From the sequence record NC_015251.1: a stretch of DNA of 64,000 nucleotides, one strand, 5' to 3'. The notes beneath the pieces were generated by a model that saw only the letters and a list, made by a program, of their open reading frames with translations, had not been told where the DNA came from and made no database searches. The translations under genes were made by a program, and so were the position numbers. The number at the start of each line of letters is the position of its first letter. The stretch's first letter is position 1. Below are positions 35,300 to 59,377 of the stretch, in pieces.

Positions 35300-35408
35300 T
35301 TCGAACGTAGTGAGACGGCGCAGCCGGTTCGTTTCACTCACATTTCTAATTATAAAGTTTCTATTAATATATTATAGAACTCTATAATTTGATTGCACTT
35401 GAAACTAT
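35300..35408 (-). repeat. copy 1 of a ~110-bp dispersed intergenic element
   Basis: Reverse complement aligns with 59265-59377; 39-nt identical core AGTTCTATAATATATTAATAGAAACTTTATAATTAGAAA. Confidence 0.9.
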
Positions 35409-35420
35409 CCTACAGACACA

Positions 35421-35455
35421 AAGAGCCTATCCCGAAATGGATAGGCTCTTTTATT
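35421..35455. terminator. intrinsic terminator after gene 35
   Basis: AAGAGCCTATCC-CGAAAT-GGATAGGCTCTT. Confidence 0.85.
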
Positions 35456-35456
35456 T

Positions 35457-38400
35457 TTAGTAGATTGCAGGTTTCCATATAGGAGACGTTATATTTAGAC
35501 CAACACCAATCGGTCTGAATGATATCACCTTATAACTGGTAGGTTTCATCCAATCTTCAAGCTCTTGAGATTTTTGAACAACATAATTTCCGTTACCTTT
35601 TGAAGCAAATACCTTCAATGGAACTTTACCCATAAAAACTACCTCAATTTCAGTAAATGGAGTAACGTTACCTTCAAACTCTATAATAACTCCGTTTGAA
35701 GGAAGTCCCTCTACTATCTTAGTTAATTTATAATTATGGATATAAAAGTCGTCTTTTAATCTTCCGTTACTTGCTACATCACCATAAGAACCATCCCATC
35801 CAATTATACCAGACGGTAATGTGGTTGTTCTGATCTTCTTATTATAAACTAGTGTGTTCTGTATTGTAGCGTCTATTGGTTGTACAAATCCAGTTTTAAC
35901 TAATTCATATCTTCTGGAATCATCTCTGGTAAGTGATGTTTCTGTTAATTCTACGGTATCTAATTGTCCCGTGAAGTTAACACCACATCGATCCGATAAG
36001 CTCCCATAAATGTGAGTGTAGTTTGTACTCGTTCTTGCTTTATTAGCTGTAATTATTACGTTTGGATATACATAATCTACAACAATATCAAATGGAGATC
36101 CTAATGCAATTCCGTGAGTCAAATTAAGATTAACCCTTTGGGTGTTTGCATTCCTAATGTTAAAGTTTAATGTAGTATTAGTCACTGTTAATTTAATAGC
36201 ATTCGCAACATCCGAGCAATTTAATAATTCCCCAGCAGAAAAGCTTTTTCCAGTAAATCTAATTCTGTATGCTTTCTCATTAGGGATCCAACTAGGAAGA
36301 ATATCCATATATTTTCCTGATATATTCGGAACCCATGCGCTCATGTTATTACCTATCATTTGCGGTTCGTAAAACTCATCAAAGAAGTAACTTTCGGATT
36401 GAACATTACTACCTATTCCATCTGTATTGGTTACATATACAACCATACTTCTCAGAATTACAGTATCCCCAATTCGCGCATTCGGAACACAAATATAAAC
36501 TCCAGAATCATAGTTGGTCGCGGTATGATCTGATATCAATATACCTTTATATCTTCCGGCTCCCAATGATTTCATAGTATCGCCAACACCAACAGACGTA
36601 CCATAAACATCTTTCAACAATACAGGCTTTGTAGATTCTATATCATATTCTATTCTAAATTTTCCCCGAGAAGGTAAATTTAAATGGTATGACATTCCAC
36701 CCTCAGAAACATCCTTAGTAAATCTGAAACTATTATTACTTAGAATGGTTATTGGATTATTTATAGAATCGCTCATTTTCCATTTACGGACGTCTACAAA
36801 ACTATATACTTTGCTTGACTGACCATTTAAGTCAACCATACCAGTTGAGTAAGAGTTTAATCTAGATTCATATATGTTCTTATATTGTCTTAGGTCTTTA
36901 TCCGCAGATATTGAAATATCCCATATTTTACCTCTCAGTATATTAACACCGTTATATCTTGCACCGATTCTTCTAACTACGGAATTTAGGTCCATTTCAA
37001 TAACTAAGCTATATGGAATACCGTTTTCTATTACAACCACGTCACCAGATGCCGAAGTTGGAGACTTTCCATTAATAGACACGATTTTATAGTTTGCCGA
37101 AGTGTTTATAGTGTTATTGGATTTTATATATACCCACCCACCTTGCAACTCTTGGGTATTACTGCTTCTACCCTCGATTATATACCCAGTAGTTGATTGA
37201 TATTGAATAAACTTTAAAGTTATATATCCTTTATTATTGATAGAATATACCGGGGGAATATCAACCCAAGAACTTCCATCAAAATTAAAAGAAAAGTTTC
37301 TATTCTTAACCCAGTCAATATTACTTGGTTTTGTTCCGTGCAATACCGGATCAGTTATACAGTCAACATCAAATTCTAGCTGGGCCATGCTTCCCGCAGT
37401 TATCCAATTATCAGCACCAGCTTTAAATGCGGTTAGATGCCAAGTATTTAAAAATCCTGCGTTTGTATTTTTAAATGCAGTAACTTCGTATCTATGATTC
37501 ATTTTTACGTTGGGATGTAAAGTTGCACCATTGTTTTTAACTATAGTGACAAACGCCTTAGCACCTTCTTTCATTCCAGCGGGTATTAAATTCGAACCAG
37601 TACCACAATATAGCCACCCAGAACCACCATTAGGAACTATGTTACTTCCAGAATAACTCATATTCCCACCGGGGCTAGTTCCCTTAACGAAATCAAGTTT
37701 TTCAGATGAACTATAATTGTAATATCTTGAGTTATTCGGATCACTCATATCTTGGTAATCTGAGGATATTACATATCCGTCCATTTCATTACCAACCAAT
37801 ATTGATTCTAATGTCCTAATTCTGGTTGCTGTAATTGTTGTAGTTCCTACTAAAACGTCATCAACATAAAAATCAACGTTAGTGTTATCAACAACCATTT
37901 TATATAGGTATTCTTTATTACAAGAAACATTTGCCTCTTTGAATATAGTTATACCATTAAAAATCAATAGGTGACCCATACCGTTCGTATATTTCTCAGA
38001 CGTACTGCCAATGAAAAATGTATCATCGGTGCCTGAACCATTACGAATTCCAGAAACATCTGTATTTGAATATACAACAGAAGTTAAATATGTAAATTTC
38101 AGACCCAATATAAGAGTTGGTAGAGTTATATATTTTCCAGACCCATAAGTGAAATGAGGAAAACTAACCGGTTCCCAATTACCATATTCAAAAGAAGTTA
38201 CGTTTTTCTCTAAAAAACTTCCAACTATATTACCGGATGTTTCTTTAGCGTCTTCTGTAATAAATCCCCATCGACCAAAGGATCCTTTCCCCGGCTTTGA
38301 TATATTTGGTTTTTTCCTATAAACAGAAATACATCTAGTACCAAATGTTCCTTGATATGAAGATTTTATAGGCCATGCGGTTGCGTATATTCTCATATTA

Positions 38401-39242
38401 TCAATTGTACTAGGGATGACTATTTCGCCGTATTTATATACCCAACTACCAGACGAGTCAGATAGATCAACGAAATCAGAAGTAACTGATGTATTCCCTC
38501 TATATCCCATAAAATACAATCTTATGGATTCTCCGGAATCCGCAGCCAAATCGTTTCTATACATATCGACACTAATTCTTAAAGTTTCTCCGGTATTAAC
38601 TACCAGACTAGCCAAACTTTGAGAACCGTTCATATATCTAACAATTTCCGGATTTGTTGGGGTTTCAGATATATATTCGTTTTGATCATACACCAAAGCA
38701 TTTCCGTAACCAGCAACACCAATATCAGAAAATGTATCAAATATAGATTCTAGCGAAACTTTAATATCACTGGATACTCCAATCATTTCTACCATAATTT
38801 TCTTTAGTCCGGTATCGAATATTGCACAATACCTTGTTGAAGATGTACCATTAGATGAATTCCAATGGTTTTCCCATCCAATATTACCAATCTTTTTAAA
38901 TACCGCATTTATTGTACTATTTGTGGTATTTGTCCCTTTTGACTTCATAAGGACAATACCAGCACTCAAAGATGTTAGCCAGCTATCAAACCGATTTACG
39001 TCAGTTTGAATAGAGAAATCAAATACATCTCGAACCCCTACAGATAGGTCCGGTAATATCTGTATACACTCAAGACCATTTCGATCTGAAGGTATAACAG
39101 AGAACCCGTCTATTGATACGATTTGGGGTTCTGTTCCATTTTCGGGAAATATCTTAATTTGATGCAATCCAGAAAAATTTTCTGATAGTGCATTCGCCTT
39201 TATGCCAGCACCTGACACACTCGAAATAATAAGTTCCGCCAT
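35457..39242 (-). CDS. 35: long tail fibre hinge gp35 fused to ~900 aa of repeated beta-rich (LamG/lectin-like) modules
   Basis: N-terminal ~330 aa resembles T4 gp35 (LESIFDTFSDIGVAGY; GSWVYKYGEIVIP; GSFGRWGF); directly downstream of 34. Confidence 0.75.
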   Translation of the reverse strand: MAELIISSVSGAGIKANALSENFSGLHQIKIFPENGTEPQIVSIDGFSVIPSDRNGLECIQILPDLSVGVRDVFDFSIQTDVNRFDSWLTSLSAGIVLMKSKGTNTTNSTINAVFKKIGNIGWENHWNSSNGTSSTRYCAIFDTGLKKIMVEMIGVSSDIKVSLESIFDTFSDIGVAGYGNALVYDQNEYISETPTNPEIVRYMNGSQSLASLVVNTGETLRISVDMYRNDLAADSGESIRLYFMGYRGNTSVTSDFVDLSDSSGSWVYKYGEIVIPSTIDNMRIYATAWPIKSSYQGTFGTRCISVYRKKPNISKPGKGSFGRWGFITEDAKETSGNIVGSFLEKNVTSFEYGNWEPVSFPHFTYGSGKYITLPTLILGLKFTYLTSVVYSNTDVSGIRNGSGTDDTFFIGSTSEKYTNGMGHLLIFNGITIFKEANVSCNKEYLYKMVVDNTNVDFYVDDVLVGTTTITATRIRTLESILVGNEMDGYVISSDYQDMSDPNNSRYYNYSSSEKLDFVKGTSPGGNMSYSGSNIVPNGGSGWLYCGTGSNLIPAGMKEGAKAFVTIVKNNGATLHPNVKMNHRYEVTAFKNTNAGFLNTWHLTAFKAGADNWITAGSMAQLEFDVDCITDPVLHGTKPSNIDWVKNRNFSFNFDGSSWVDIPPVYSINNKGYITLKFIQYQSTTGYIIEGRSSNTQELQGGWVYIKSNNTINTSANYKIVSINGKSPTSASGDVVVIENGIPYSLVIEMDLNSVVRRIGARYNGVNILRGKIWDISISADKDLRQYKNIYESRLNSYSTGMVDLNGQSSKVYSFVDVRKWKMSDSINNPITILSNNSFRFTKDVSEGGMSYHLNLPSRGKFRIEYDIESTKPVLLKDVYGTSVGVGDTMKSLGAGRYKGILISDHTATNYDSGVYICVPNARIGDTVILRSMVVYVTNTDGIGSNVQSESYFFDEFYEPQMIGNNMSAWVPNISGKYMDILPSWIPNEKAYRIRFTGKSFSAGELLNCSDVANAIKLTVTNTTLNFNIRNANTQRVNLNLTHGIALGSPFDIVVDYVYPNVIITANKARTSTNYTHIYGSLSDRCGVNFTGQLDTVELTETSLTRDDSRRYELVKTGFVQPIDATIQNTLVYNKKIRTTTLPSGIIGWDGSYGDVASNGRLKDDFYIHNYKLTKIVEGLPSNGVIIEFEGNVTPFTEIEVVFMGKVPLKVFASKGNGNYVVQKSQELEDWMKPTSYKVISFRPIGVGLNITSPIWKPAIY

Positions 39243-39258
39243 TTTAAATCCCCAATTA

Positions 39259-39284
39259 AAAAGCCACCCCGAAGGATGGCTTTT
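39259..39284 (-). terminator. intrinsic terminator between 34 and 35 (cUUCGg loop)
   Basis: Minus strand AAAAGCCATCC-TTCG-GGGTGGCTTTT. Confidence 0.8.
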
Positions 39285-39286
39285 GT

Positions 39287-42200
39287 TTAACTAATCCAAA
39301 CAAAGTCTACAGACTTGGTTACTGGGTTTGCTCTTATCTCTAAGAATTCCCCGTTACCAACTGCTATCCTAAGTTTATTTAGGGTTGTAGTTCCAGAAAC
39401 CGCAACGTCTCCATTTGCAGTCAATGCCTTTATAGAGTTGATGATCAACTCTCCGGTCATAGTATCACCGCCCTTGAATACCCGAGTTCCGGATGTGTTA
39501 TTAACATCATCGATCACAGAGTCGAGGTAATCTTTACGGATCGCGTCTTCTGGTTCAACTGGGGTAGTGGTCATTATTTTAACCTGACCAGAAACCCGTA
39601 GATCTCCGTTAGGTTCAAATCGACTCACGTTTGCAGGAGAAGCCAATCCGTTTGGACGGATAGACAATCCATTTAGAGAACCAAATGATATACTTTCATC
39701 AAGACCTATACTTATTCCACTCTTAGATGTATTACCCATCCAGATATTGTGAACACCATTTTTCTTAAAGTAAGTATCTGCGTTGAATGTTTTCTGACCA
39801 GTAATAGTTTCGTTAACTCCACCCGCAGCCTTAACATAACGAATTTCGGTGTAACCGTAACGAGTTAAGTGATCATTATGAGTCGGGTCAAATCCACCAT
39901 TTGAAACGTTATTTGTAAATACCGCATTACCATTTCTGTTTAGTGTCCATACTCGGTAATATGAACCTCCGGCATCTTTAGCGTTAACAACTAACGGACC
40001 ATCAACCGCATTAACACCTATATCAAGTTGTTGGCTAGTTACCCCACCTTTATAGGTCAACATGGTTATCTGTGAAGTACCACGTTCATCCACCAATGTA
40101 AGGGCTGCACCATTACCAGATATTAACGGGTTAGCACTAAATGTCATAACTCCGGTAATTGTCTGAGCGATAGTTCTACGAACCCAATCTGAAGAAGGAA
40201 CTCTAACACCACCCTCATCCATTGCATCCGCACTAACCGCAACAGCCCGTTTAGGTAAAAAGTTCATAAGAGCTGTGTTTAATCCTCTAGGAGATACAAC
40301 AATGTCCCCATGGGCATAACTTGAAAGAGTCCGAGTAGAACCAGCAATGTCGTTACCTTCAAACACGGAATTCGCCACGTTATTGTTCGTCAATACCGCA
40401 GTCATACCAACACCATATCTGGCATCTGTCATTCGGTAACTAGTACCGGATCTGACCGAGTTCAGATTAGTCAAAGGTGTTACTGCCTTGGTGTTATTTG
40501 TACCGGTATCAACATCACCTTGTGTGGCTAAGTACAATATACCAGTCTGGCTTGTTGAAGCCATACGCGCCGAAAGCTTTCTAGGAGTCAAGATCACATC
40601 GTCTCTAGAACCAACAGACATATCATTTGACTCTGCTTGTGTGGCGATTCTAGCAGTTCCTCTTTGGATTTCTGTAGGTACAACAACACCAAACTGTTGA
40701 CCTTGCCAGATATTTCCTGTAGAAGTAAGACCGTCATCCGCGACAACAGTTAGACGCTCACGAACCAACCAGTTTCCAAAAGTTTTAGGAGACACAAAGA
40801 ATCTATCGTGTAGGGTTCCTGCATCTACTTCTGCTTGGGTAGAGGTTTCACCCAAACCGGTTCTGGTTTCTGTTGCGGTACGGCTAACCAAACCTTTCGG
40901 GGTTACATGCACGTTGTCATCAGCCGGTGGAGCCATGCTAATCACTTCAGCCGCAGTTGCTGCCCGAGTCAAACCGGTCATGGCTGACGTTGCTTGACGA
41001 CCGTTTAAAGTGGTTGCAGTAACTACCAACGGACCATTTGCATTATCAGCCGCACCTGTGTTAACCTCGTTTTGGTTACCAACGAATACCATCCCTTGGG
41101 AGAATTCAGTTGCTACCTTTTCAAACAGGGTTTTAGGAGTTACTGCATTAGAATGGTCTGTGAAGTCATGAACCCCAGTACCTTTAGTGGTTCTAGTTGG
41201 TTGTTTTGTTCCACCAAAATTGACAAGACCAATCAAACCCGGCATAGTCTCGGTAGATATACGACCTGCTAATGTTTGTGGAGTAATTGCAACCTGACCC
41301 CAGTTTTCGCCAGATCCTGACTGCGCGTTAGCTTGTGCTTGAGTAGCAACCTTAAACACACCTCTCATTGAGGTAGTTCCTAACCGGTCATTTAGTAGAA
41401 ACGGGGTAATTGCTACACCCGACCAAGCTTCATCATTCAGGTTTCCGGTAGTTGCTTTTGATTCTAGGTTAGTAGATAATCTAATTATACCACGTCTGGT
41501 TCCTGTTGCCGTTTTGTTAGCTAAAGGTTTCTGAAGTAACGAAATCCTCACAATCTGGGTTTTGACCAGTGGAATATCTTCTTTATTTTTGTTAACACTA
41601 GCTTGTGATGCAATCGAAGCCATACCATAAAAATCTGGAACGGTTCTATCTACTCGGTATGGAATTGTTGTCATGGTCACTAGTGCCCACACATCATTTC
41701 CAGATCCTAACGCATTTTTAAAGTATACAAATTCCATCTGTTCGCCACGGTTATTAATGGCAAATGTCTGGGTTTTTGTAATGTGACTAGGAAGGTCGGT
41801 AAGTAGATCTCTATATGCACTAATTCTAGGATTTGTCAACGTATTTCCATCAGGTAAGAAATAATCGTTGGTACTTCCTGCATCAATAGACAAGGTTAAG
41901 CTAGAACCGTTGACCATATATCGTGTGTCAACAAACAGACTATCCCCGTTTGCCGCATCTTTTGGAAAAGTTATCTTTACTTCAGTTGAGGTTTGTGTGT
42001 ATACTACCAACTGGTCATTCGGAGAAGAACTGTAAGTTGCGGTTTTTACACTTTTCCAACGACTCATACTGTCAGAGTCGAAAACTCTCCAAGCGTTAGC
42101 GTTACGGTCAAAAACTAGGATACCCCAATCGGTGGAATCAAATTGAGCAGTTTTAACAGATGGTTGACCTGCAATAACAATTATGTTATGCGTACTATCT

Positions 42201-42982
42201 GGATGAACTGATATTGTTGTTTTCGTTACAGGGTTCATACCATCGAGATCGTAAGTTGTTACGGTATCTCCATGATTTGCATATTTGGGCAAACCTATCT
42301 TTATTCCTCCGGAATATTGGGTTTCCCGCATTAGTTGATCCCCGACCATAGCCTTGTAGTAAGAACCTGCCAGATATGAACTATTGCTTATAATTTTCTT
42401 GTTTGTGTCGCCTCGGTACTCTACTTGTGCGATCCACTCACTACCACTCAAAATAAAATATACCGCAGAATATGGAGCGGTGATTTTGAATACCGCAACG
42501 CCAGAAATGGTTCTTCCATTTCCATCAACATCAACGGTAAAATCGTGTAGGTTTGTTCCATTATCACGGATAACTACCATATCACCATTAAGAGCTTGAG
42601 CCGGTAGCGTAAATCTTATGTCTTGTACTGTAGATTGAACTATGATATGCTCGCCCGATTGAATCGTTGTAAGAGCTGGTGCGTTAGTTGTTACAAGTCT
42701 CCAAGATGGATCGGTACGAACCGGACGCCATCTAATAGGGTTAAAATCTTCTGGGGTTGTAATATTTACCAAACTAACATAAACTCGGTTGTTATAAATA
42801 ACCGCAAAGTCCTTCTTATACGTGCGGGCTTTGTCATATTGTTGAATTGTATTTTCATCAATAAAAAACTTTACGTTAACTCCATCTAAAGGAGCTGTTA
42901 TATCTGGGTAACCAACGTTTATGATAGACTTACCAGCGGCATCTAAGCCATCCGTAACTCTAAAAGCAATGTTTGCTGCCAT
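39287..42982 (-). CDS. 34: long tail fibre proximal subunit
   Basis: N-terminal FRVTDGLDAAGKSIINV; multiple ATxxxxG...ATQ.E...VTP repeats; divergent from rnh as in T4. Confidence 0.93.
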   Translation of the reverse strand: MAANIAFRVTDGLDAAGKSIINVGYPDITAPLDGVNVKFFIDENTIQQYDKARTYKKDFAVIYNNRVYVSLVNITTPEDFNPIRWRPVRTDPSWRLVTTNAPALTTIQSGEHIIVQSTVQDIRFTLPAQALNGDMVVIRDNGTNLHDFTVDVDGNGRTISGVAVFKITAPYSAVYFILSGSEWIAQVEYRGDTNKKIISNSSYLAGSYYKAMVGDQLMRETQYSGGIKIGLPKYANHGDTVTTYDLDGMNPVTKTTISVHPDSTHNIIVIAGQPSVKTAQFDSTDWGILVFDRNANAWRVFDSDSMSRWKSVKTATYSSSPNDQLVVYTQTSTEVKITFPKDAANGDSLFVDTRYMVNGSSLTLSIDAGSTNDYFLPDGNTLTNPRISAYRDLLTDLPSHITKTQTFAINNRGEQMEFVYFKNALGSGNDVWALVTMTTIPYRVDRTVPDFYGMASIASQASVNKNKEDIPLVKTQIVRISLLQKPLANKTATGTRRGIIRLSTNLESKATTGNLNDEAWSGVAITPFLLNDRLGTTSMRGVFKVATQAQANAQSGSGENWGQVAITPQTLAGRISTETMPGLIGLVNFGGTKQPTRTTKGTGVHDFTDHSNAVTPKTLFEKVATEFSQGMVFVGNQNEVNTGAADNANGPLVVTATTLNGRQATSAMTGLTRAATAAEVISMAPPADDNVHVTPKGLVSRTATETRTGLGETSTQAEVDAGTLHDRFFVSPKTFGNWLVRERLTVVADDGLTSTGNIWQGQQFGVVVPTEIQRGTARIATQAESNDMSVGSRDDVILTPRKLSARMASTSQTGILYLATQGDVDTGTNNTKAVTPLTNLNSVRSGTSYRMTDARYGVGMTAVLTNNNVANSVFEGNDIAGSTRTLSSYAHGDIVVSPRGLNTALMNFLPKRAVAVSADAMDEGGVRVPSSDWVRRTIAQTITGVMTFSANPLISGNGAALTLVDERGTSQITMLTYKGGVTSQQLDIGVNAVDGPLVVNAKDAGGSYYRVWTLNRNGNAVFTNNVSNGGFDPTHNDHLTRYGYTEIRYVKAAGGVNETITGQKTFNADTYFKKNGVHNIWMGNTSKSGISIGLDESISFGSLNGLSIRPNGLASPANVSRFEPNGDLRVSGQVKIMTTTPVEPEDAIRKDYLDSVIDDVNNTSGTRVFKGGDTMTGELIINSIKALTANGDVAVSGTTTLNKLRIAVGNGEFLEIRANPVTKSVDFVWIS

Positions 42983-43019
42983 TGTGTAAATCCTCGTATT
43001 AAAAATATATCCACTTATG

Positions 43020-43027
43020 TATTTAGG
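43020..43027 (-). promoter_or_regulatory. late promoter CCTAAATA for gene 34
   Basis: Same octamer precedes 23, 24, uvsW, inh and 40. Confidence 0.7.
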
Positions 43028-43037
43028 AGAAAGATAA

Positions 43038-51142: not shown

Positions 51143-51184
51143 TATAAAGGGGGAGATAATCCCCCAAAATAAAGAGGATCTATA

Positions 51185-51808: not shown

Positions 51809-51809
51809 T

Positions 51810-52082: not shown

Positions 52083-53587
52083 TACAGTATAACCTCTTTA
52101 ATTTGATATTCGAAATGTTCAGAATTGTACCGTTCAATGCGATTCAATCCATGTTTGTACAAAAAGTTTTTATGATTATACTTGACAGAACCGGGTTTAC
52201 TATTTTTTGATTCCGTACAAAGGTTATCTATAATATCCCACAGATGAGCAAGTAGTTTAGAATCGTGTTTTCTTAAAACCCGACCTATAGACTGCAACGT
52301 TAATACTTTGGATTTCAAACCAGAGCCAAATATAACGTGATGTAATTTCTTTATAGAAATACCGGTCGCAAATATACCATAAGACGCAACGATGATAATT
52401 CCGTCCCCAGCTTCGGCGGCAACTTTTAGCGCGTCCCGATCAACAGTCTTAGTATCACCATTAGCAAAGAATACCTTATCATGCTTCTTACATAGTGCCT
52501 CATAAAGTTTCTTTCCATGGGCTTTATGTCTAAAAAGTATTAAGGTATTTTCATTATTTACCTTGCTTAATTTAAGAGCCAGCTTACATACAAACGCATT
52601 ACGCTTTGTATGTTCTTCCATAAATGTCACTTCTTGTTGATACTCAATACCTTTAGTAACTACACAATCTTCTTTAGGATATCTCAGGAACAGACAATTA
52701 ATTTTTAGGTCTGTTACTTGTCCCTCTTCCATAAGCTGTTTTGTACTTACCGGCTTATATACATCACCAAATACCCCTACATACGACATAATATTACATT
52801 TACCGTCTTTAAGGGACCCACTCATACCAAACTTAAAAGGGCATTCGTTTAGATTTGTTATGATATTCTTTATCTCAGATCCTACGTTATGACATTCGTC
52901 AATCATAAGCATACCGAATTGTTTAAACCAATGAGCCGGTTGTTTAGATGCACTTTGCCAAGTAGAAACGTAGATAGGGCACTCTGAATCTTTTCTCTTA
53001 CCTGCCATAATACCATGAGTAAATGACGGGCTTATGAATCCATAATCGTTGAAGTCATCCAACATCTGAGTAACCAACGATGTTGTAGGAACGATTAATA
53101 GAACTTTCCCGCTATAATTAGTGATATACCAATAGCAAAGTAAAGCAGCGATTAGAGATTTACCCGCAGACGTTGGAAGGTTTAATATTCCACGATTTTT
53201 TGTGATCGCATAATAAACTGCATCCGCCTGATACCAATGAGGGGTAATAGGTTCACCTTTGCTCATAATTTGGATACCATTCAACCATGCATCAAATTCT
53301 TCTCTACTTACAAAATTAGGTTCTGGATTGAAATCAGAATCCTTTGTGAAGTCGTATTCATTTTTAGCGCAATATTTTTCTAGGTGATTAACCAAACCGT
53401 ATGGAAATTTACCATCAGGTTGTAATAGCCGGATCCTTCCGTCCCAACTACTATATTTAAATTTAGGGTTGAACCTCGCACCGCCATCCATTTCAAAAGA
53501 GTAATATTCTCTCAATTCTCTAAAAATGTCTTGATCGGTTTCAATTTCAGCATGACTATAATCATGGAATTTTACGTTAACTTTCAT
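52082..53587 (-). CDS. uvsW: UvsW RNA-DNA/branch-migration helicase (SF2)
   Basis: PHWYQ, LPTSAGKS, STWQS, IDECH, SGSL, LQSIGRVLR. Confidence 0.97.
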   Translation of the reverse strand: MKVNVKFHDYSHAEIETDQDIFRELREYYSFEMDGGARFNPKFKYSSWDGRIRLLQPDGKFPYGLVNHLEKYCAKNEYDFTKDSDFNPEPNFVSREEFDAWLNGIQIMSKGEPITPHWYQADAVYYAITKNRGILNLPTSAGKSLIAALLCYWYITNYSGKVLLIVPTTSLVTQMLDDFNDYGFISPSFTHGIMAGKRKDSECPIYVSTWQSASKQPAHWFKQFGMLMIDECHNVGSEIKNIITNLNECPFKFGMSGSLKDGKCNIMSYVGVFGDVYKPVSTKQLMEEGQVTDLKINCLFLRYPKEDCVVTKGIEYQQEVTFMEEHTKRNAFVCKLALKLSKVNNENTLILFRHKAHGKKLYEALCKKHDKVFFANGDTKTVDRDALKVAAEAGDGIIIVASYGIFATGISIKKLHHVIFGSGLKSKVLTLQSIGRVLRKHDSKLLAHLWDIIDNLCTESKNSKPGSVKYNHKNFLYKHGLNRIERYNSEHFEYQIKEVIL

Positions 53588-53618
53588 GTGAATCTCTCAT
53601 TATATTCTAATACTATAT

Positions 53619-53638
53619 TATTTAGGGATCTCTAAATA
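53619..53638. promoter_or_regulatory. back-to-back late promoters (CCTAAATA minus for uvsW; TCTAAATA plus for 53686 gene)
   Basis: TATTTAGG at 53619-53626 and TCTAAATA at 53631-53638. Confidence 0.65.
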
Positions 53639-53685
53639 AAGTAGGGAATGAGAACTCATTCCTTCCTATAAGTAGGGGAATAATC

Positions 53686-54051
53686 ATGTTAATAAACAAT
53701 AAATTGTTTAAGGACACCCTACCCGTACTATCAGTTGTCATTGCAATTTGGGCCTCGATATTCTCATATAATGAGTTTATTGCAGACGCTCGCCAAGTTG
53801 CATTGAAAGAGCAGATCACAACCCACATGGACAAGTCTATAGACAACCTTAGAACGGAGATTAAAAGTCTCCCAAATAAGGAGTCGGTGGAAACTGCCCA
53901 ACTAAGGGCTATGCTATACAGTAAAGACTTGATCGATGAGGCTAATCGGGGGAACCGACTTGAGATTGCTGAACTGGAAAAGCGTATTGGTGATATGGAA
54001 AGCGCAAGTATCGAATCGAAAGATCGTAAAAAGCGTAGAGAAGACGGTTAA
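53686..54051 (+). CDS. late single-pass membrane protein with coiled coil
   Basis: 121 aa; hydrophobic LPVLSVVIAIWASIFSY followed by a helical region. Confidence 0.7.
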   Translation: MLINNKLFKDTLPVLSVVIAIWASIFSYNEFIADARQVALKEQITTHMDKSIDNLRTEIKSLPNKESVETAQLRAMLYSKDLIDEANRGNRLEIAELEKRIGDMESASIESKDRKKRREDG

Positions 54052-54068
54052 AGGGTTTGTCTAAGTGG

Positions 54069-54099
54069 GTCACACGCGAGAGCATGTGACCTTTTTTTA
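54069..54099 (+). terminator. intrinsic terminator
   Basis: GGTCACA...TGTGACC followed by TTTTTTT. Confidence 0.7.
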
Positions 54100-54108
54100 T
54101 AAAAAGTG

Positions 54109-54137
54109 TTGACCTATCCATCTGGTTTAGGTATTAT
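54109..54137 (+). promoter_or_regulatory. sigma70-like early promoter
   Basis: TTGACC-17 bp-TATTAT with an upstream A-tract. Confidence 0.7.
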
Positions 54138-54168
54138 CTATCTCGTTGAGACGCAAAAGGAATCAAGA

Positions 54169-54651
54169 ATGATGAACAAAGAATTTGAATTTATGTTTGA
54201 TATGGATGGTGTTCAGGCCGATTGGTGCCATTCATTTGATGTTGTGTACGGTTCCGGTGCCTCTGAAATTTTTGATAGTCTTGGAAAAGAAGAAAAGAAT
54301 GTTGTTAAGGCAGAGCTTGCAAATGGTGATTTTTATCGTCACCTTCCAGTAATGGAGAAAGGTGTGGCTCTGGTGATAGAACTGGTTCGGCGCGGTCGTA
54401 AAGTTAGATCCTGACCAGTGTTGGTCGTCAGAACCCAAAAAACGTAGTTCGTCAGAAGAGAGCATGGATCTCTGATGTGTACCCCTGCTGACGTTGCTGT
54501 TGTTCTTCTGGAAAATTTCTATTATACTCTGTGTAGTGAAGATAAAGCAGCGTTTGCCCGTCCTAATGTGTGTCTGGTAGATGACCGAGCGAAAAGCCGT
54601 GAACCTTTCATTGCTGCCGGTGGCGTTGCTGTTGATATTGTTGACCTTTAA
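54169..54651 (+). CDS. HAD-family 5'(3')-deoxyribonucleotidase-like protein, two frameshifts
   Basis: FDMDGV (motif I) in the listed ORF; ILTSVG and LVDDR (motif IV) recovered in shifted frames. Confidence 0.75.
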
Positions 54652-54663
54652 GAGGAATTTGTT

Positions 54664-54981
54664 ATGTTGATTGAAAGTCTGTCTGTTGGTGCGGTTTGTC
54701 TTGGTCTTGCCTATGGTCTTGACAAATTTATGGGAACTGGGTTGTTTAAATGGAAAGAGACCCCAAAAGATATCAATTTAGTTATCTCTAAGGAAGACCA
54801 AAATCGAAAATTGAAGAATGAACTCAATTTGGGTAAGATTGTTAATGAACAAAAAGTTAAAAACAAAAATTATTACGGTGGTCATAAAGCAAAGGTTATC
54901 CATAAAGAGCATAAGCTTAATAAACCGCATCCAGTAATTGTTAATTTTGTAAATAAATTGTATAAGGAAAACCAAAAATGA
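54664..54981 (+). CDS. hypothetical protein with N-terminal membrane anchor
   Basis: 105 aa; GAGGA SD. Confidence 0.7.
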   Translation: MLIESLSVGAVCLGLAYGLDKFMGTGLFKWKETPKDINLVISKEDQNRKLKNELNLGKIVNEQKVKNKNYYGGHKAKVIHKEHKLNKPHPVIVNFVNKLYKENQK

Positions 54982-55295
54982 ACCAAGAACAATACCAACA
55001 CATCTATTTTTCAAAATGTAGCACATCGATCTGGCGAAACAATAACGGTCGTGATGCAGAGGCTTTGCCTAAAAACAAACCACTCGACTTTTTGAATGAA
55101 CAATGTGAACTTGTAAATTCTGGTAAAAAGTATTTTGTATGTACCTGTTGTGGTACAGCAAAAGATAAAGAGCAACTTATCGGAAATGTATTTGCAGGAT
55201 ATTACTGTTATGAATGTCACGATAAAACCCCGCAGATCCAACGGAACCTTCGTGATAGTAAAAATCTGGATTTTATGACTAATTTAATTATATGA
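54978..55295 (+). CDS. hypothetical Zn-ribbon protein
   Basis: CTCC...CYEC motifs; ATGA overlap. Confidence 0.7.
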   Translation: MNQEQYQHIYFSKCSTSIWRNNNGRDAEALPKNKPLDFLNEQCELVNSGKKYFVCTCCGTAKDKEQLIGNVFAGYYCYECHDKTPQIQRNLRDSKNLDFMTNLII

Positions 55296-55305
55296 GGAAG
55301 AATAA

Positions 55306-56313
55306 ATGATTTTTGTAAAATATAACTCTCTGGAAAACCACTATCGTCAGAACGTAATTGATGCATTCGTTAATGCTGGGTACACCGCCCCCGGAGTTGA
55401 TTGGGTAGTAATGAAAAACCTCCACGGAACTAATTTTCAACTGGCAGTAGATGAATCCCATGTACAGGCTGGGCGGCGAACCGACCTTCTTGGAGATTTC
55501 GACCAGTTCTTTGAAGCGGATCTCATTGTAAAACGTTATGAAGAAAAGGCTAGGGAAGTATTCAACGAAATTAAACTGTGTATTGATAACGTAACACAAA
55601 TTACCATTTTCGGGGAATATGCGGGTAATCTTACCTCTGGTAAGAAGATCCAAAAAGAAGTAGAATATGGGGATCAAGATTTCTACGTATTCGATATCAT
55701 GGTTTTTGTAGAAGGGGAAGAGTCTGGTTACTACCTACACCATGATGCAGTTATGGAGCTTATTAAAAATAAATTCAAACATGCACCAGTGATCTATATT
55801 GGGAGTTTTGATGGTGTTACCAAACTTCCGAATGACTTCCAATCCATAGTAATCCCGTCAAACAAGGCTGGTAAATTTGGATTGGTTGAAGGGACTGATA
55901 ACATTGCAGAGGGTTTTGTTGCAAAAACTGCTAATGTGGTGTATACCCGATTTGGTCGGGCAATCTTCAAATCTAAAAACTCCAAATTTACCGAGAAAGG
56001 TAAATCTGATAAACCTGTTAAGGTGAAGGAACCTCTTGGAGAATCCGACCTTGAAATGGTACATGAGATCTCAGAATATCTAAATGTAAATCGTCTCAAA
56101 AACGTCCTTAGTAAGATTGGGATCCCGACTACCAAGGAATTTGGTAAGGTTGCTGGTAACCTATCCAAAGACGCAATTGAAGATTACACCAAGGACACAG
56201 AAAAGAGTCTCCGCGATGCAGATCGCCCGTCTGATGTAGGTAAAGCAGTGAACAACCTTGCAGGGGAACTTGTTCGGGATAACTGGATGAACATTTTGGA
56301 CGGAAATTTCTAA
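55306..56313 (+). CDS. rnlB: RNA ligase 2
   Basis: FVKYNSLENHY, HGTNF, IFGEYAG, FYVFDI, EGFV, IFKSKNSKFTEK; motif I reads KNLHG instead of EKxHG. Confidence 0.93.
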   Translation: MIFVKYNSLENHYRQNVIDAFVNAGYTAPGVDWVVMKNLHGTNFQLAVDESHVQAGRRTDLLGDFDQFFEADLIVKRYEEKAREVFNEIKLCIDNVTQITIFGEYAGNLTSGKKIQKEVEYGDQDFYVFDIMVFVEGEESGYYLHHDAVMELIKNKFKHAPVIYIGSFDGVTKLPNDFQSIVIPSNKAGKFGLVEGTDNIAEGFVAKTANVVYTRFGRAIFKSKNSKFTEKGKSDKPVKVKEPLGESDLEMVHEISEYLNVNRLKNVLSKIGIPTTKEFGKVAGNLSKDAIEDYTKDTEKSLRDADRPSDVGKAVNNLAGELVRDNWMNILDGNF

Positions 56314-56332
56314 AATAAATTAAAAAAAGGGG

Positions 56333-56361
56333 TTGCATCGGTCAGCCCCTTTTGGTATCTT
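56333..56361 (+). promoter_or_regulatory. sigma70-like early promoter overlapping the rnlB terminator hairpin
   Basis: TTGCAT-17 bp-TATCTT; AAAAGGGG...CCCCTTTT inverted repeat spans the -35. Confidence 0.6.
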
Positions 56362-56398
56362 ATTCATATCGAAACAAGAGATGAAAAGGAAGAGAATC

Positions 56399-57025
56399 AT
56401 GAACAACGAAAAATTCGAAATTCTGATGAGTGAAGCGGTTGAGATGGTTGAAGCTGGTTTTGTTTCTAAAGCCGGTCAAAAAAGAGCCCTCGCACTTTGC
56501 ACATCAATGATGGATATGATTCGTGCGGAATTCTCCGGTGCATATCTCGACCTTTACAACTACGAAGAACGTGACTTGCCAGAAAATCAAGCGGCTTGTG
56601 ACCTGTATTATGCCCAACCGAACACCGCGACTTTCGCAAAGTATTTGGTAAAGGCAGAAACCGCAGTGGGTCGTATGGATAAAGAGGTTGTTAACTCCCT
56701 GATTGCTCTTGGTGAACAAGTTGTTGCGATGATAGCAACAATCAAGGCCGCAGAAATCAAAGCTCCCGAGCCGAAAGTAAGCGAGCGCGAGATTGCAGTT
56801 AAGGAATCCATCATGGACCTGATGAAACGCCGTGGTGAACAATATAACCGTTGTCTGCGCCTTGATGAAATGTTCGGGACTATGGGTATCACCGCGAACG
56901 TTCACATTGTTCACGGTCACAAAGGAACTGTGTTTCTTCGCGCCTTCTACTACATTCTCGGTCATCTGACCCCCCTGAGTGTGATTATCGCAGCGATTGA
57001 AGAAGCTAATAAGCGTAATAAATAA
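56399..57025 (+). CDS. early hypothetical protein (208 aa)
   Basis: Start re-assigned to MNNEKF downstream of the early promoter. Confidence 0.75.
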   Translation: MNNEKFEILMSEAVEMVEAGFVSKAGQKRALALCTSMMDMIRAEFSGAYLDLYNYEERDLPENQAACDLYYAQPNTATFAKYLVKAETAVGRMDKEVVNSLIALGEQVVAMIATIKAAEIKAPEPKVSEREIAVKESIMDLMKRRGEQYNRCLRLDEMFGTMGITANVHIVHGHKGTVFLRAFYYILGHLTPLSVIIAAIEEANKRNK

Positions 57026-57033
57026 GAAGACAA

Positions 57034-57065
57034 GAAACGTTGGCTTGAAAAGGTCAACGTTTCTT
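57034..57065 (+). terminator. terminator-like hairpin
   Basis: GAAACGTTGGC...GGTCAACGTTTC inverted repeat. Confidence 0.55.
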
Positions 57066-57095
57066 GACAATTAACTTAAAAGGTAATTTTCAAAA

Positions 57096-57757
57096 ATGAA
57101 AAAACTAATGATTGCTGTCATGTTTGCTTTTCCAATGTTTTCACATGCGGCATCATTTGATTGTGCGAATGCTTCAACTACGGTAGAACTGACGATCTGT
57201 GATGACGAAAAACTGAGTAAACTTGACGAAGAACTTAATAAAGTATATAAACTTGCACGTATACACGACCCGTCAATTGTAAAGTCACAAATTGATTGGG
57301 TTAAAATTAGAAATAAAGCACTTCAGTTGAGCAACTTGATGATCTACATGAATCAAGAATTGCGATTCTAAAGTCTGTTGTAAAACCCACAATCAAACCA
57401 GTTATGATTCGTAATGAATCAGCAGAAATATCATCTTTCTCTACATCGGATAATATAAATACAGTTATTGAGTCCGTTAAAAATAACAAGAGCGATAATA
57501 TTTCAGTTGATGGTTTCGTTTTTAATACAAAGAAAGTAGATTACAAATCCCCCGAGTGGTTGAGTAATTGCGTTAAAGATGAAATAAAAATGACTTATAA
57601 AGTTAACTTTTCCGGAAGAACTGATAAAATGACGGAATATAAAATTATCAACGCACTAACAAACGCAAAATTGAAACAAACCATGGATAGTATCAATGGC
57701 GGTTATGTGACAAAAGACGAACTGTTTAACAATTGTATGTCTGGGATAGGTTTCTGA
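57096..57757 (+). CDS. secreted LprI-like (lysozyme-inhibitor-type) protein, frameshifted near 57320
   Basis: Sec signal MKKLMIAVMFAFPMFSHA, then ASFDC...ELTICDDEKLSKLD..L...Y...SQIDWVKIRN; the shifted frame is continuous with ORF 57404-57757. Confidence 0.7.
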
Positions 57758-58020
57758 TGAACAAGAAAGCCCGTGAGCTGATGATAGAGCTAATTGGAAG
57801 AGGTATTGATTGTAGGGTACTAACTTCAAACACAAGCACGTATATAGACGTACAGGGGCATTTGGTGAGGGTTTCTGACCATAGGGGTCATTCGAAATTC
57901 AAAGGTACTCAGATAAGAAAAGATATCGGGTACTCACGAACTAAATATGGTATGATATTTGGTTATGGTGAAATTCACATGGCTATAAAACATATCATTA
58001 AGGAAATAACACCTAAATAA
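57757..58020 (+). CDS. hypothetical basic protein
   Basis: Start MNKKAR overlapping the previous stop; VRVSDH motif. Confidence 0.65.
   Translation: MNKKARELMIELIGRGIDCRVLTSNTSTYIDVQGHLVRVSDHRGHSKFKGTQIRKDIGYSRTKYGMIFGYGEIHMAIKHIIKEITPK
58012..58019 (+). promoter_or_regulatory. late promoter CCTAAATA for inh
   Basis: Octamer 25 nt upstream of the ATG. Confidence 0.7.
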
Positions 58021-58044
58021 TATAACAAAAGAGGAAAAATCCTA

Positions 58045-58848
58045 ATGGCACGTAAAAAAGAAGAAGAACTTAAAGAACTAGATCTGGGTGTAATTAATGA
58101 AATTATAGAAGAAAATAGCGCCCCAGACGCAAAGGTTAAAATTCAAGTTTATGCAAAAGAATGCGGTTTCAAGATCGGTAAATCTAATATTTCGGTTGAT
58201 GATATGGTAGTCAAACTTCTTGAAATGGCTGACGCAAAGGAAAATCAAAAACTAGAATATAGCCCACTAAACAAGATCAAGACTCCCGAGGTATATTCTG
58301 AGGTAAAACAGATTACTCCGGAAGAAGAACTCGAACTGGCAGAAGATATTGAACAATTCGATCCTGTTGTTGAAGAAAAAGAACCGTTCCTCAATCCGGG
58401 GGAGGTAGTATCAATTAATGATATTCCGGAAGATATTAAAACTGAAATTGTTGATGCTATTAAATCTGGTGAGGTTGTCATTACGGCACCGACAAGCCCA
58501 ATTGAAGAGGTGATTACAGGTATTCACTCATATGTTCCTTCATTAGGAACAAGTCCATGGTTTCCACCAGAACAACCAAAAGAAATAGAAATTAATTTTG
58601 AACCTGATCTTTCTGGATTCACTCCACGTATTAACTTGATTGGGGCTGTTGGTCAACAATATATGAACTGTCCTTATTGGATTTTGGATTGGATTTTGGA
58701 AAATGGAAAGGATTGGAAAACTAAAATCGAAACACATCCGAGAGAAACAGATCATCCTATTCTGAAAACTGTTTTATACTATATTCAGATCCATGGTAGT
58801 GTTACTGTTAGGGAAAGTCGAAACTCACGTTACCATACTCTTTATTGA
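58045..58848 (+). CDS. inh: inhibitor of prohead protease Inh
   Basis: N-terminal YAKECGFKI...DDMV; C-terminal YMNCPYWILDWI...LKTVLYYIQIHGSVTVRESRNSRY as in T4 Inh. Confidence 0.88.
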   Translation: MARKKEEELKELDLGVINEIIEENSAPDAKVKIQVYAKECGFKIGKSNISVDDMVVKLLEMADAKENQKLEYSPLNKIKTPEVYSEVKQITPEEELELAEDIEQFDPVVEEKEPFLNPGEVVSINDIPEDIKTEIVDAIKSGEVVITAPTSPIEEVITGIHSYVPSLGTSPWFPPEQPKEIEINFEPDLSGFTPRINLIGAVGQQYMNCPYWILDWILENGKDWKTKIETHPRETDHPILKTVLYYIQIHGSVTVRESRNSRYHTLY

Positions 58849-58852
58849 TGAT

Positions 58853-58880
58853 TAAGCCATCCTTTTTAGGGTGGCTTTTT
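58853..58880 (+). terminator. intrinsic terminator after inh
   Basis: AAGCCATCC-TTTTTA-GGGTGGCTTTTT. Confidence 0.8.
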
Positions 58881-58930
58881 AATATCCCTAAATAAAAAGG
58901 CCATATTTGGCTATAACAAGGGTATTAAAA

Positions 58931-59200
58931 ATGAATTATAGATTCATAAAGATTGACAACAATTTTGTATTACTTCTTGGTTATAAAGGTGGGATACAAA
59001 TGATTAGAAAATTGAGGGATGGGATTGTATCTGACAATATCTATGAGTTTATTCGTTTGATAAGCCAGTACCTAGATGATGGGTTTATTGTGATCGTGTA
59101 TGATCTGGAAGAGAATAGATTCATTAAGATAAATGAAGAAAAGATTGATATTTTTTTAATTTTCATTATATCATGTAAAATGATGGTTTATGAACTATAA
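58931..59200 (+). CDS. small late hypothetical protein
   Basis: CCTAAATA at 58887-58894; start re-assigned to MNYRFIKID. Confidence 0.6.
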   Translation: MNYRFIKIDNNFVLLLGYKGGIQMIRKLRDGIVSDNIYEFIRLISQYLDDGFIVIVYDLEENRFIKINEEKIDIFLIFIISCKMMVYEL

Positions 59201-59205
59201 GTTAA

Positions 59206-59230
59206 CAGGAACCTTTTGGTTCCTTTTTTG
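59206..59230 (+). terminator. intrinsic terminator
   Basis: AGGAACC-TTTT-GGTTCCTTTTTT. Confidence 0.85.
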
Positions 59231-59264
59231 TATGTATTTTAACCTAATAATGGTTAAAAAGTAT

Positions 59265-59377
59265 ATAGTTTCAAGTGTAATCAAAGTATAAAGTTCTATA
59301 ATATATTAATAGAAACTTTATAATTAGAAAATGTGTGAGTGAAACGAACACGGCTCCGCCGACTCGCTTTGCTCGAA
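59265..59377 (+). repeat. copy 2 of the ~110-bp dispersed intergenic element
   Basis: Aligns with the reverse complement of 35300-35408 along its full length. Confidence 0.9.

Follow-up and report, generated by a model that had tools for sequence, protein, structure and literature searches.

Bacteriophage T4 has at least five replication origins; oriF and oriG each pair a promoter with an unwinding element, and oriE carries iterons (PMC3016281). The first two, ori(uvsY) and ori(34), are about 100 bp long, with a promoter followed by an easily melted AT-rich stretch, and are R-loop primed from MotA-dependent middle promoters; the known T4 origins lie at several sites round the genome and have no shared sequence or repeated motif. 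OriE lies inside gene 5 and uses 12-nt iterons, RepEA/RepEB and an antisense primer RNA, which the T4 record annotates as antisense to gene 5. T4-type genomes also carry PeSLs, or promoter-early stem-loops, similarly about 100 bp long, with an AT-rich region, a promoter and a stem-loop (PMC2839356, PMC4122927). Found in RB49/phi1, T4/PST and KVP40/nt-1, these are conserved intergenic composites, numerous, gene-oriented and concentrated in hyperplastic regions, with terminating or attenuating stem-loops and a link to indels between close relatives; their early promoter is near consensus (-35, N17, -10), and a Shine-Dalgarno sequence and ATG stand at the 3' end. REP/BIME, RIP and Correia-type MITEs are chromosomal hairpin mosaics present in tens to hundreds of copies, some of them RAYT- or transposase-dependent.

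We analysed a window of 64,000 nucleotides, bases 1-64000 of Aeromonas phage 65, in which a first-pass annotation had described two inverted copies of a composite element. Both copies are real and non-coding, and they lie where they had been placed, with 88.5% identity across 113 bp (E = 2e-35, blastn against the 235-kb genome) and a 39-nt identical core at 35343-35381 in copy 1 and 59292-59330 in copy 2. Each is found 3' of a terminator-like hairpin and 5' of a promoter-like site and a tiny ORF, as follows:

35420-35451, unstranded: terminator-like hairpin after gp35, directly upstream of copy 1 (context, outside the repeat)
35300-35408, minus strand: copy 1 of the element (locus 1), flanked by gp35 and its terminator on one side and by ORF p047 on the other
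35381-35407, minus strand: copy 1 L arm (TAGTTTCAAGTGCAATCAAATTATAGA), with -35-like GTGCAA at 35393-35398
35348-35389, minus strand: copy 1 imperfect AT-rich dyad, its outer arms 12 bp long
35327-35341, minus strand: copy 1 box H (GTGAGTGAAACGAAC)
35316-35326, minus strand: copy 1 GC mini-hairpin, CGGC-TGC-GCCG
35302-35314, minus strand: copy 1 box T (CTCACTACGTTCG)
35262-35290, minus strand: promoter-like TTTACA-17-TATGAT downstream of copy 1, before the 38-aa ORF p047 (context)
59207-59224, plus strand: terminator-like hairpin upstream of copy 2 (context)
59265-59377, plus strand: copy 2 of the element (locus 2), flanked by ORF p076 and its terminator on one side and by ORF p077 on the other
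59266-59292, plus strand: copy 2 L arm, with -35-like GTGTAA at 59275-59280
59284-59325, plus strand: copy 2 AT-rich dyad, first TATAAT within 59294-59304, second TATAAT and TAGAAA at 59317-59330
59335-59349, plus strand: copy 2 box H
59351-59361, plus strand: copy 2 GC mini-hairpin, CGGC-TCC-GCCG
59363-59375, plus strand: copy 2 box T variant (CTCGCTTTGCTCG), in which all four substitutions improve pairing with box H
59383-59412, plus strand: promoter-like TTTCTG-18-TATAAT downstream of copy 2, before ORF p077 (seen by eye, unflagged by the scan)

Mis-assembly of the copies was considered and rejected, since the window element is present in contigs from three of four public runs; these contigs (not raw reads in any run, and in one case labelled RNA) have a summed depth of about 10-fold and break at the element.

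Each element combines a conserved 27-bp arm bearing a weak, sigma-70-like -35, an AT-rich dyad that gives TATAAT, and a third module where a purine-rich and a pyrimidine-rich box flank the GC mini-hairpin. The two short boxes are GTGAG[C/T]GAA[G/A]CGAAC and CTCACT[A/T]CGTTCG, with one box H and one box T per element in opposite senses. The imperfect AT palindrome, its flanks, ATAGTTTCAAGTG(C/T)AATCAAA and GTGAGTGAAACGAAC, the CGGC-nnn-GCCG stem and the TCGAA end are found in both window copies as first described. In copy 1, the first TATAAT, the -10 of a putative promoter P1, is in the left half of the dyad, and the second is in the right half, with TAGAAA after it (35343-35356). The L arm is the best-conserved part across genera and in a prophage copy; within it is a short dyad, TTTCA-NN-TGAAA, which is free of mismatches in copies 102a and 102b, and the whole element is a set of nested inverted repeats. 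Dyads of the family make up five of the 18 most AT-rich 44-bp stretches genome-wide, a measure of composition and not of melting, and the AT-rich 42-bp dyad lies downstream of the -35, as an unwinding element would.

P1 is promoter-like and in register in all lineages, although its -35 is weak in most copies. It reads TTGAAA-16-TATAAT in copy 102b (11/12) and TTGCAA-18-TATAGT in the prophage copy (9/12), and the window copies score 9/12 with a -35 of 3/6 by our own count. No MotA box was found at the element, and no MotA domain in the ORFs beside asiA; a by-eye comparison with the IHF consensus gave no match in the element, and TGnAATCAA is not a general promoter motif in the phage 65 genome. 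No terminator-like site was called inside any scanned copy, the hairpins having no T-run in element orientation.

The count of two copies reflected the limits of the window: genome-wide the family has seven copies at six intergenic loci, with no partial copies elsewhere in phage 65. The five further copies lie outside the window:

102148-102217, plus strand: further copy
102352-102289, minus strand: further copy
136609-136521, minus strand: further copy
174542-174429, minus strand: further copy
226931-227046, plus strand: further copy

Three of the six loci fall in core or late-gene regions, and locus 3 is an inverted pair of copies. On the circular map the loci are over-dispersed (minimum gap, P = 0.006-0.009) and evenly spaced (P = 0.001-0.002), both tests being post hoc; such regularity could also come from close direct repeats deleting the DNA between them. 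Orientation relative to neighbouring genes varies, with four loci sense, two antisense and one locus carrying both. The sense position just past a terminator, correctly described for the window copies, does not extend to the whole family, in which one copy begins on the stop codon of the upstream gene. Mixed orientation is compatible with a site that acts at the level of DNA, or with an origin transcript.

The element is conserved in relatives. It occupies the same six loci in the CC2 group, a sister genus, the loci being orthologous in 65, CC2 and Aszh-1, and it is present in ZPAH1 at both loci examined (1 and 3). Between genera, the arm and boxes keep about 90% identity, against just 35-90% for the orthologous proteins in tblastx pieces. 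Copies within one genome are 91-94% identical, against 80% between orthologous sites; as paralogues are more alike than orthologues, the family appears to undergo concerted evolution, which implies frequent exchange between copies.

The boxes also occur beyond Emmerichvirinae. RB43-type phages carry them at a single intergenic locus as inverted arrays on either side of an AT dyad, with four boxes in RB43; most of the listed records (Cronobacter, Enterobacter, Citrobacter and Klebsiella phages) share a 42-nt core at 100% identity, and for RB43/RB16-type coliphages the match is longer, at 94-100%. The element is found in an unrelated temperate prophage of Aeromonas, with no recognisable replication gene next to it; what phage 65 and this prophage share is limited to a lysozyme and a generic GIY-YIG domain. 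Unrelated phage contigs carry the box pair in the 5' leaders of sigma-factor, invertase and integrase genes, a placement more suggestive of an RNA or leader signal than of an origin.

The build of the element suggests a replication start site or a promoter cassette. We tentatively favour the first, in which promoter-plus-unwinding modules act as dispersed replication origins of the T4 oriF/oriG/oriE kind, at somewhat less than even confidence. What we infer is that the internal promoter is transcribed, that the DNA opens there and that the element takes part in replication: host RNA polymerase would start a short transcript within the AT dyad, the transcript or a box-binding protein would hold the dyad open, and the phage helicase-primase would be loaded there. 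The origin-like architecture proposed at first pass is strengthened by the six conserved, evenly spaced loci, the independence of orientation, the very AT-rich dyad and the iteron-like boxes that flank an AT dyad in RB43-type phages; a promoter and leader cassette explains nearly as much. GC skew shows no switch at the elements, which is uninformative for a T4-like phage and lends no support, and a non-exhaustive search of neighbouring ORFs and prophage-shared genes gave no candidate for a cognate initiator. A broader proposal, which we hold more loosely and consider rather doubtful as a whole, is that the box pair CTCACT(A/T)CGTTCG / GTTCGCT(A/T)CGCTCAC with its AT dyad would be an undescribed cis signal common to Emmerichvirinae, RB43/RB16-type phages of enterobacteria, the prophage and unrelated environmental phages, read by a conserved host or phage factor, with the six homogenised, evenly spaced copies of Emmerichvirinae serving as replication origins.

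Nearly as likely as the origin reading, and a real possibility, is a PeSL-like cassette in which a promoter (P1 and/or the second TATAAT) and a structured leader (box H, hairpin, box T) would set the expression or stability of the downstream transcript, with recombination incidental and no role in replication. The register of P1 and TATAAT across lineages agrees with it, as does locus 5, the only locus where the element runs right up to the Shine-Dalgarno sequence and ATG of the gene that follows, which it does in both genera. In three unrelated contigs, moreover, consensus TTGACA-N16-18-TATAAT promoters stand 20-60 nt upstream of the box pair, which in two of them precedes a sigma-factor gene. 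This cassette would nevertheless leave the regular spacing unexplained, and two conserved loci are antisense to every neighbouring gene. A second, better promoter follows copies 1 and 2, the stem-loops are without U-tracts, and the spacer and arm are conserved far beyond the needs of a promoter. Six fixed loci, with no link to indels between relatives, also differ from dozens of copies in hyperplastic regions.

A site for a dimeric DNA-binding protein with a genome-scale role other than an origin is unlikely, although the arm dyad, the nested inverted repeats, the regular spacing and the irrelevance of orientation would all agree with it. Such a site might serve topoisomerase or gyrase, a domain boundary or clamp- or condensin-type loading, or be a recombination hot spot where cutting of a cruciform starts recombination-dependent replication. 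The extended palindromes of ZPAH1 locus 1 and of the locus 3 pair of phage 65 could extrude, and the copy exchange implied by concerted evolution also agrees with this reading; most copies, however, lack the length at which a palindrome is cleaved efficiently. A candidate reader protein was found neither beside any of the copies nor among the features shared with the prophage, and the reading is purely inferential.

Somewhat less probable again is a structured RNA: the AT palindrome might fold into a processing hairpin of RNase III type, or the copies might give a multi-copy small RNA with box H as its seed. Folding of the elements is better than that of shuffled sequences (z = -1.5 to -3.2; z = -6 for ZPAH1 locus 1), in most copies module B forms an irregular hairpin some 40 nt long, and its apical stem shows compensating forms (CGGC/GCCG and CGCC/GGCG, with CCC/GGG and CAUGC/GCAUG in unalignable copies), to which the pairing-improving substitutions of copy 2 may be added. 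Covariation is nevertheless weak, as both sides change at one pair only and 42 of 500 shuffles show likewise. The two strands fold equally well, orientation is mixed, no intrinsic terminator is present, and in RB43-type and other phages, where both boxes sit side by side, no consistent fold was found. Against Rfam 15, the window and 15 related loci gave no match at gathering score, permissive matches being far below threshold, which speaks against the ncRNA listed among the first-pass alternatives.

The small mobile element listed there fares worse, and we consider it improbable that these are selfish MITE-like elements, or relics of such elements, that passed from one Aeromonas phage to another, stay alike through gene conversion and do nothing for the phage. 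High similarity within the genome and presence in an unrelated prophage of the same host genus would suit such an origin, as would inverted ends, which only some copies have: repeats of roughly 40 bp made of box H and hairpin in the prophage copy, inverted arms with an extended palindrome at ZPAH1 locus 1, and the locus 3 pair. It is contradicted by the identity of the six loci in two genera, with no insertion polymorphism in the mapped loci (65, CC2 and Aszh-1 in full, ZPAH1 at two), and by the lack of target-site duplications flanking any copy and of a transposase in Pfam scans of ten further ORFs, including two annotated endonucleases; conservation of the arm between genera with such divergent proteins is also unlike relics. 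What looks like a TAGTTT repeat at two loci is not a duplication, since TAGTTT there begins the early-type promoter that follows.

That the 24-kb segment between copies 1 and 2 is flipped by their recombination, as a regulated switch of the Hin/Gin type, an inversion possible in principle, as the first-pass annotation had noted, is very improbable: the copies are inverted, a run of 39 identical nt in 113 bp at 88% may suffice for phage recombination and PeSL pairs are reported to recombine (PMC2839356), but neither copy has a recombinase gene, order and orientation are the same in every mapped relative, with no sign of inversion in phage 65.2, avDM6, CC2 or Aszh-1, no junction evidence was found, and loose ends in metagenome contigs are flanks of other copies. 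AP1, the sole record with swapped flanks, was treated as an assembly artefact because it is scrambled at many places unrelated to the element.

Compared with known systems, the family resembles REP/BIME, RIP and Correia-type repeats as a modular hairpin mosaic that sits at gene ends, has an AT-rich or protein-binding segment in its centre and is homogenised in each genome; it differs in having 6-7 copies, in a virulent phage, with no RAYT-like or transposase enzyme. With PeSLs it shares a conserved intergenic composite of about 100 bp with an AT tract, sigma-70-like hexamers and a GC stem-loop, and an expectation of recombination between copies; unlike them it has six fixed loci, mixed orientation, a non-terminator stem and a long, conserved, non-consensus arm. 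The likeness to oriF and oriG lies in the size, in the order of putative promoter and AT-rich stretch and in the spread of several sites round a T4-type genome, whereas the phage 65 element is without a MotA box, adds the GC hairpin and box motifs, and is one homogenised sequence at all its sites. From oriE it differs in being intergenic and in that no RepE-like protein was identified for it; neither the phage 65 boxes nor any exact 10-mer repeated at least three times occurs in the T4 stretch read. As in oriE, short repeated boxes stand beside the putative initiation region, and some phage 65 copies would yield transcripts antisense to their neighbours.

The sequence of the window is exactly that of Aeromonas phage 65 (NC_015251/GU459069, 235,229 bp; Straboviridae, Emmerichvirinae, Ishigurovirus) from base 1 to base 64000, and the two copies of the ~110-bp element that the first-pass annotation had described there were found at the same coordinates and strands, with the same identical 39-nt core (35343-35381 and 59292-59330). 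In a blastn search within the genome, the copies share 88.5% identity over 113 bp (E = 2e-35). As had also been stated, both are non-coding and unannotated and each lies just past a terminator-like hairpin; a promoter-like site and a tiny ORF follow. The pair is, however, only part of a family, since blastn and an nhmmer profile recovered exactly seven copies at six loci of the whole phage 65 genome and no partial copies, and the element's sub-motifs were found at no other place in that genome.

Copies of the element in phage 65
35408-35300, minus strand: copy 1, at locus 1 (35.3 kb), after gp35
59265-59377, plus strand: copy 2, at locus 2 (59.3 kb)
102.1-102.4 kb: locus 3, an inverted pair (copies 102a and 102b) between genes 54 and 26
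136.5 kb: locus 4
174.5 kb: locus 5
227.0 kb: locus 6

Four loci (1, 2, 4 and 5) are sense with respect to the genes around them and two (3 and 6) are antisense, with both orientations present at locus 3. On the circular map the loci are separated by 24, 43, 34, 38, 52.5 and 43.6 kb. In post hoc comparisons with random placement, a minimum gap as large has P = 0.009 under a uniform null and P = 0.006 when only gene boundaries are allowed, and the evenness of the gaps has P = 0.002 and 0.001, respectively; deletion-driven loss of close direct repeats could contribute to this pattern.

The possibility that one copy is a mis-assembly was not borne out by contigs assembled from four public runs, which, rather than raw reads, are the read evidence used here. 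Contigs of three runs (a horse metagenome, an unspecified metagenome and an RNA-labelled run) have a summed depth of ~10-fold over 35313-35413, and they break at the element with loose ends that are the flanks of other copies; the fourth run has zero depth over the element, and the RNA-labelled runs that hold the phage behave like DNA. The repeat is thus genuine, and wild relatives carry it in multiple copies. It also breaks short-read assemblies, several public genomes of the group being truncated or N-containing exactly at element sites; the Aszh-1 and AS-zj assemblies have Ns, a poly-T replacement and truncations inside element copies.

Several features lie close to the window copies. Beside copy 1, the ORF at 34224-35120 (plus strand) encodes a SegE-type GIY-YIG homing endonuclease (Pfam E = 7e-30), and in two metagenomes the contigs part from the window sequence precisely at the boundary of nrdA and this gene (loose ends at 34151 and 34263), which makes the junction upstream of the gene a polymorphic one in nature. 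The region 3' of copy 2 (59413-60060) holds only short broken ORFs, namely the annotated 39-aa p077 followed by 30-aa and 54-aa pieces in other frames, with ~540 bp unannotated. It looks like a decayed gene; the pieces gave no Pfam match, and the gene may have encoded a DprA/SLOG-like protein. Next to it, p078 (60076-60357, plus strand) carries a RyR domain (Pfam E = 2e-11).

The element is a composite of two modules. Module A (~66 bp) comprises a 27-bp L arm, TAGTTTCA-NN-TG-N-AATCAAA-N-TATA, then an AT-rich imperfect dyad with 12-bp outer arms (AATTATAAAGTT and AACTTTATAATT), then TATAATTAGAAA; in module B, two short boxes, box H (GTGAGTGAAACGAAC) and box T (CTCACTACGTTCG), flank a GC mini-hairpin with a variable loop. 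A sigma-70-like putative promoter, P1, keeps a constant register in all lineages: its -35 lies inside the L arm (TTGAAA, TTGCAA or GTGCAA), the spacer is 16-18 nt, and the place of the -10 is taken in phage 65 by the first TATAAT, for which the CC2 group has TATAAG and the copy of an Aeromonas prophage TATAGT. P1 scored 11/12 in copy 102b and 9/12 in the prophage copy; the scan did not flag it in the window copies, where the -35 matches at 3/6 positions by our own count.

Other identities were tried and rejected. A tRNA or tmRNA remnant, prompted by the GTTCGAA end, was negative in ARAGORN. A MotA-type middle promoter was set aside because the ORFs beside asiA lack a MotA domain and other TGnAATCAA sites in the genome are random or coding. 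IHF, CRP, parS, SlmA, sigma-54, sigma-32, dif and RfaH ops motifs, group II intron domain 5 and the d(GCGAAGC) mini-hairpin were compared by eye with the element and were rejected or left open. A late promoter was discarded as well, since the late motif of phage 65, CTAAATA, is not in the element. This motif mostly follows C/T-rich bases and is not the T4 TATAAATA, which has just 24 exact occurrences in the genome and, among the 28 late-gene upstream regions listed, is found before wac alone.

Examples of late-gene upstream regions with the CTAAATA motif in the window
42983-43037: g34
57990-58044: inh
61619-61730: g24
63410-63530: g23

The first-pass annotation had left it to relatives to speak for or against the element, and there it proved to be conserved. 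Matches occur in 21 INPHARED records, all Emmerichvirinae phages of Aeromonas, at 3-8 places per record. With flanks mapped by tblastx and copies read directly, CC2 has the same six loci with one copy apiece, Aszh-1 has five copies, and loci 1 and 3 of ZPAH1, those examined, are both occupied. Module A is 94% identical within phage 65 and 91% within CC2, while between the two phages orthologous pairs (80%) are no closer than non-orthologous ones (79.8%); such homogenised copies point to concerted evolution, or to co-evolution with a reader. Between genera, by contrast, the L arm and boxes are near-constant, which argues for purifying selection on them, and the dyad centre has a lineage-specific sequence, yet stays AT-rich and symmetric throughout. 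Module order varies: L arm, centre, inverted L arm and B at ZPAH1 locus 1 (RNA fold z = -6), A, spacer and inverted A at phage 65 locus 3, and inverted B, A and B in the prophage copy. A long hairpin stands just 5' of locus 5 in both genera; its stem has ~11 bp in phage 65 (genome 174.55-174.64 kb, or 24545-24640 of genome piece L004) but ~20 bp in the CC2 group. As the two hairpins are unrelated in sequence, structure appears to be kept without it. We conclude that this composite cis element is under selection, that its copies are homogenised and that its six regularly spaced positions are fixed.

Across 185,579 genomes of bacterial and archaeal species, the only match to the pattern of the L arm lies in the Aeromonas rivipollensis chromosome, in one temperate prophage that is present in IMG/VR too, and a host repeat was thus rejected. 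The prophage carries genes for TerS, TerL, portal, protease, lysozyme, Ant/Rha, an H-NS-like protein and tail, and has only the lysozyme and a generic GIY-YIG domain in common with phage 65. Its element lies within a 1.2-kb non-coding region, flanked by ~40-bp inverted repeats made of box H and its hairpin; this region is probably a regulatory hub and possibly an origin. The same region (7400-7460 and 8060-8200 of the prophage sequence L042) has three direct ATGACACTAT repeats and 2-3 copies of the palindrome TTCCGAA-N-AATATTCGATTT, and a short SegE_GIY-YIG gene is 2.7 kb off. A 30-bp stretch of the otherwise unrelated prophage (L042 11876-11905) matches the terminator-like gp34-gp35 intergenic region of the window (39258-39286) with 97% identity (E = 4e-5).

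Judged from a scan of IMG/VR, the boxes are part of a wider, previously undescribed phage motif. The box pair, CTCACT(A/T)CGTTCG, 2-17 nt, GTTCGCT(A/T)CGCTC, is carried by RB43-, RB16-, Lw1- and CfP1-type T4-like phages, by two distant T4-like contigs and by unrelated contigs. In the RB43 group it occupies one unannotated locus upstream of gene 3, with 64 matching records in total; a 42-nt core is 100% identical in most records listed, the phages with this core having Cronobacter, Enterobacter, Citrobacter and Klebsiella as hosts, and in RB43/RB16-type coliphage records a longer stretch is matched, at 94-100%. The RB43 intergenic region runs through two purine boxes, an L-arm-like GATAGTTAACA, an AT-rich dyad and two pyrimidine boxes, and is thus an AT dyad flanked by inverted box arrays; a late promoter and then gene 3 follow. 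In three unrelated contigs the pair lies 20-60 nt 3' of consensus sigma-70 promoters, preceding a sigma-factor gene in two of them, and in others it stands before an invertase, integrase or HNH gene. No common fold was predicted for the pair in these phages. T4 has no such boxes at 72-84 kb, including the gene 3-gene 2 gap, and no similarity to the T4 oriE iterons was seen. Our literature search met these sequences in no relevant setting, and such a repeat goes unmentioned in the papers on phage 65 and P19 that were consulted.

As to function, which we infer, a role in replication initiation modelled on T4 ranks first, as a tentative choice. The origin-like architecture proposed in the first-pass annotation is plausible, and an origin would account for the number, spacing and orientation independence of the loci, as well as for the AT dyad, the putative promoter inside the element and the inverted arrays of boxes. 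Against it, no GC-skew switches were seen at the elements, no initiator protein was found, other phages have the boxes in 5' leaders of ordinary genes too, and no recognisable replication gene lies near the prophage copy.

A promoter/leader cassette akin to the promoter-early stem-loops (PeSLs) of T4-type phages comes close behind. It would account for the promoter, for boxes in leader position and for the way locus 5 is laid out, but not for copies that are few and fixed, for loci in antisense, for the redundant promoters further downstream or for the spacing. The element also lacks two traits by which PeSLs are defined, namely a stem that acts as a terminator and numerous copies, linked to indels, in hyperplastic regions (PMC2839356, PMC4122927).

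Another DNA-binding or recombination role is unlikely. We regard a structured RNA, raised earlier as an ncRNA, as improbable. The element folds better than shuffles (z -1.5 to -3.2), and module B is predicted to form an irregular hairpin of ~40 nt in most copies, with an apical stem that changes in a compensating manner from CGGC/GCCG to CGCC/GGCG in aligned copies and reads CCC/GGG or CAUGC/GCAUG in copies too divergent to align; in copy 2, four substitutions in box T all improve pairing with box H. However, covariation, suggested earlier as a check, is weak, with a single pair changed on both sides among 6 alignable sequences, a result equalled by 42/500 shuffles; Rfam gave no match, and forward and reverse strands fold equally well, which discounts a strand-specific structure.

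A selfish MITE-like element, the small mobile element of the first-pass annotation, is more improbable still: the loci are orthologous, and neither a target duplication nor a transposase or RAYT partner was found, the two annotated 'endonucleases' being a CapR/DUF723 protein and UvdE. The former, p326 (genome 189.2-190.2 kb; L004 39200-40171), has four CapR-homology domains plus DUF723 and is a possible multi-domain DNA binder; the latter, p360, is a UvdE UV-endonuclease. That copies 1 and 2 form a switch flipping the ~24-kb segment between them is very improbable, as the public contigs gave no sign of an inversion isomer, relatives with mapped flanks are collinear, and the sole discordant record, AP1 (254 kb), has a scrambled gene order with joins at two elements and at many element-unrelated sites (asiA beside a truncated gp35, for example), so that it was rejected as evidence of an element-mediated rearrangement.

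To our knowledge, the replication origins of T4-type phages outside T4 are essentially unmapped, and those of T4 have no common motif. If the element is an origin, one recognisable element would mark six evenly spaced sites in one subfamily, along with one ultra-conserved site in the RB43 group, which grows on E. coli, and origin choice and the coupling of transcription, unwinding and helicase loading would become testable. If it is a promoter/leader cassette, the conserved box pair would be a new regulatory signal across unrelated phages. Of the systems concerned, RB43 with its E. coli host is the easiest to work with.

T4 has at least five origins spread round its genome, of which oriF and oriG consist of a promoter and then an unwinding element (PMC3016281), and oriE has iterons (PMC3016281) and an antisense primer RNA (T4 annotation). 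The element is like oriF and oriG in joining a promoter, here a putative one, to an AT-rich stretch of a kind that may unwind, at several sites round the genome. It is a variant of a phage origin module or of a regulatory cassette, to which the shared box pair is an unexpected addition.
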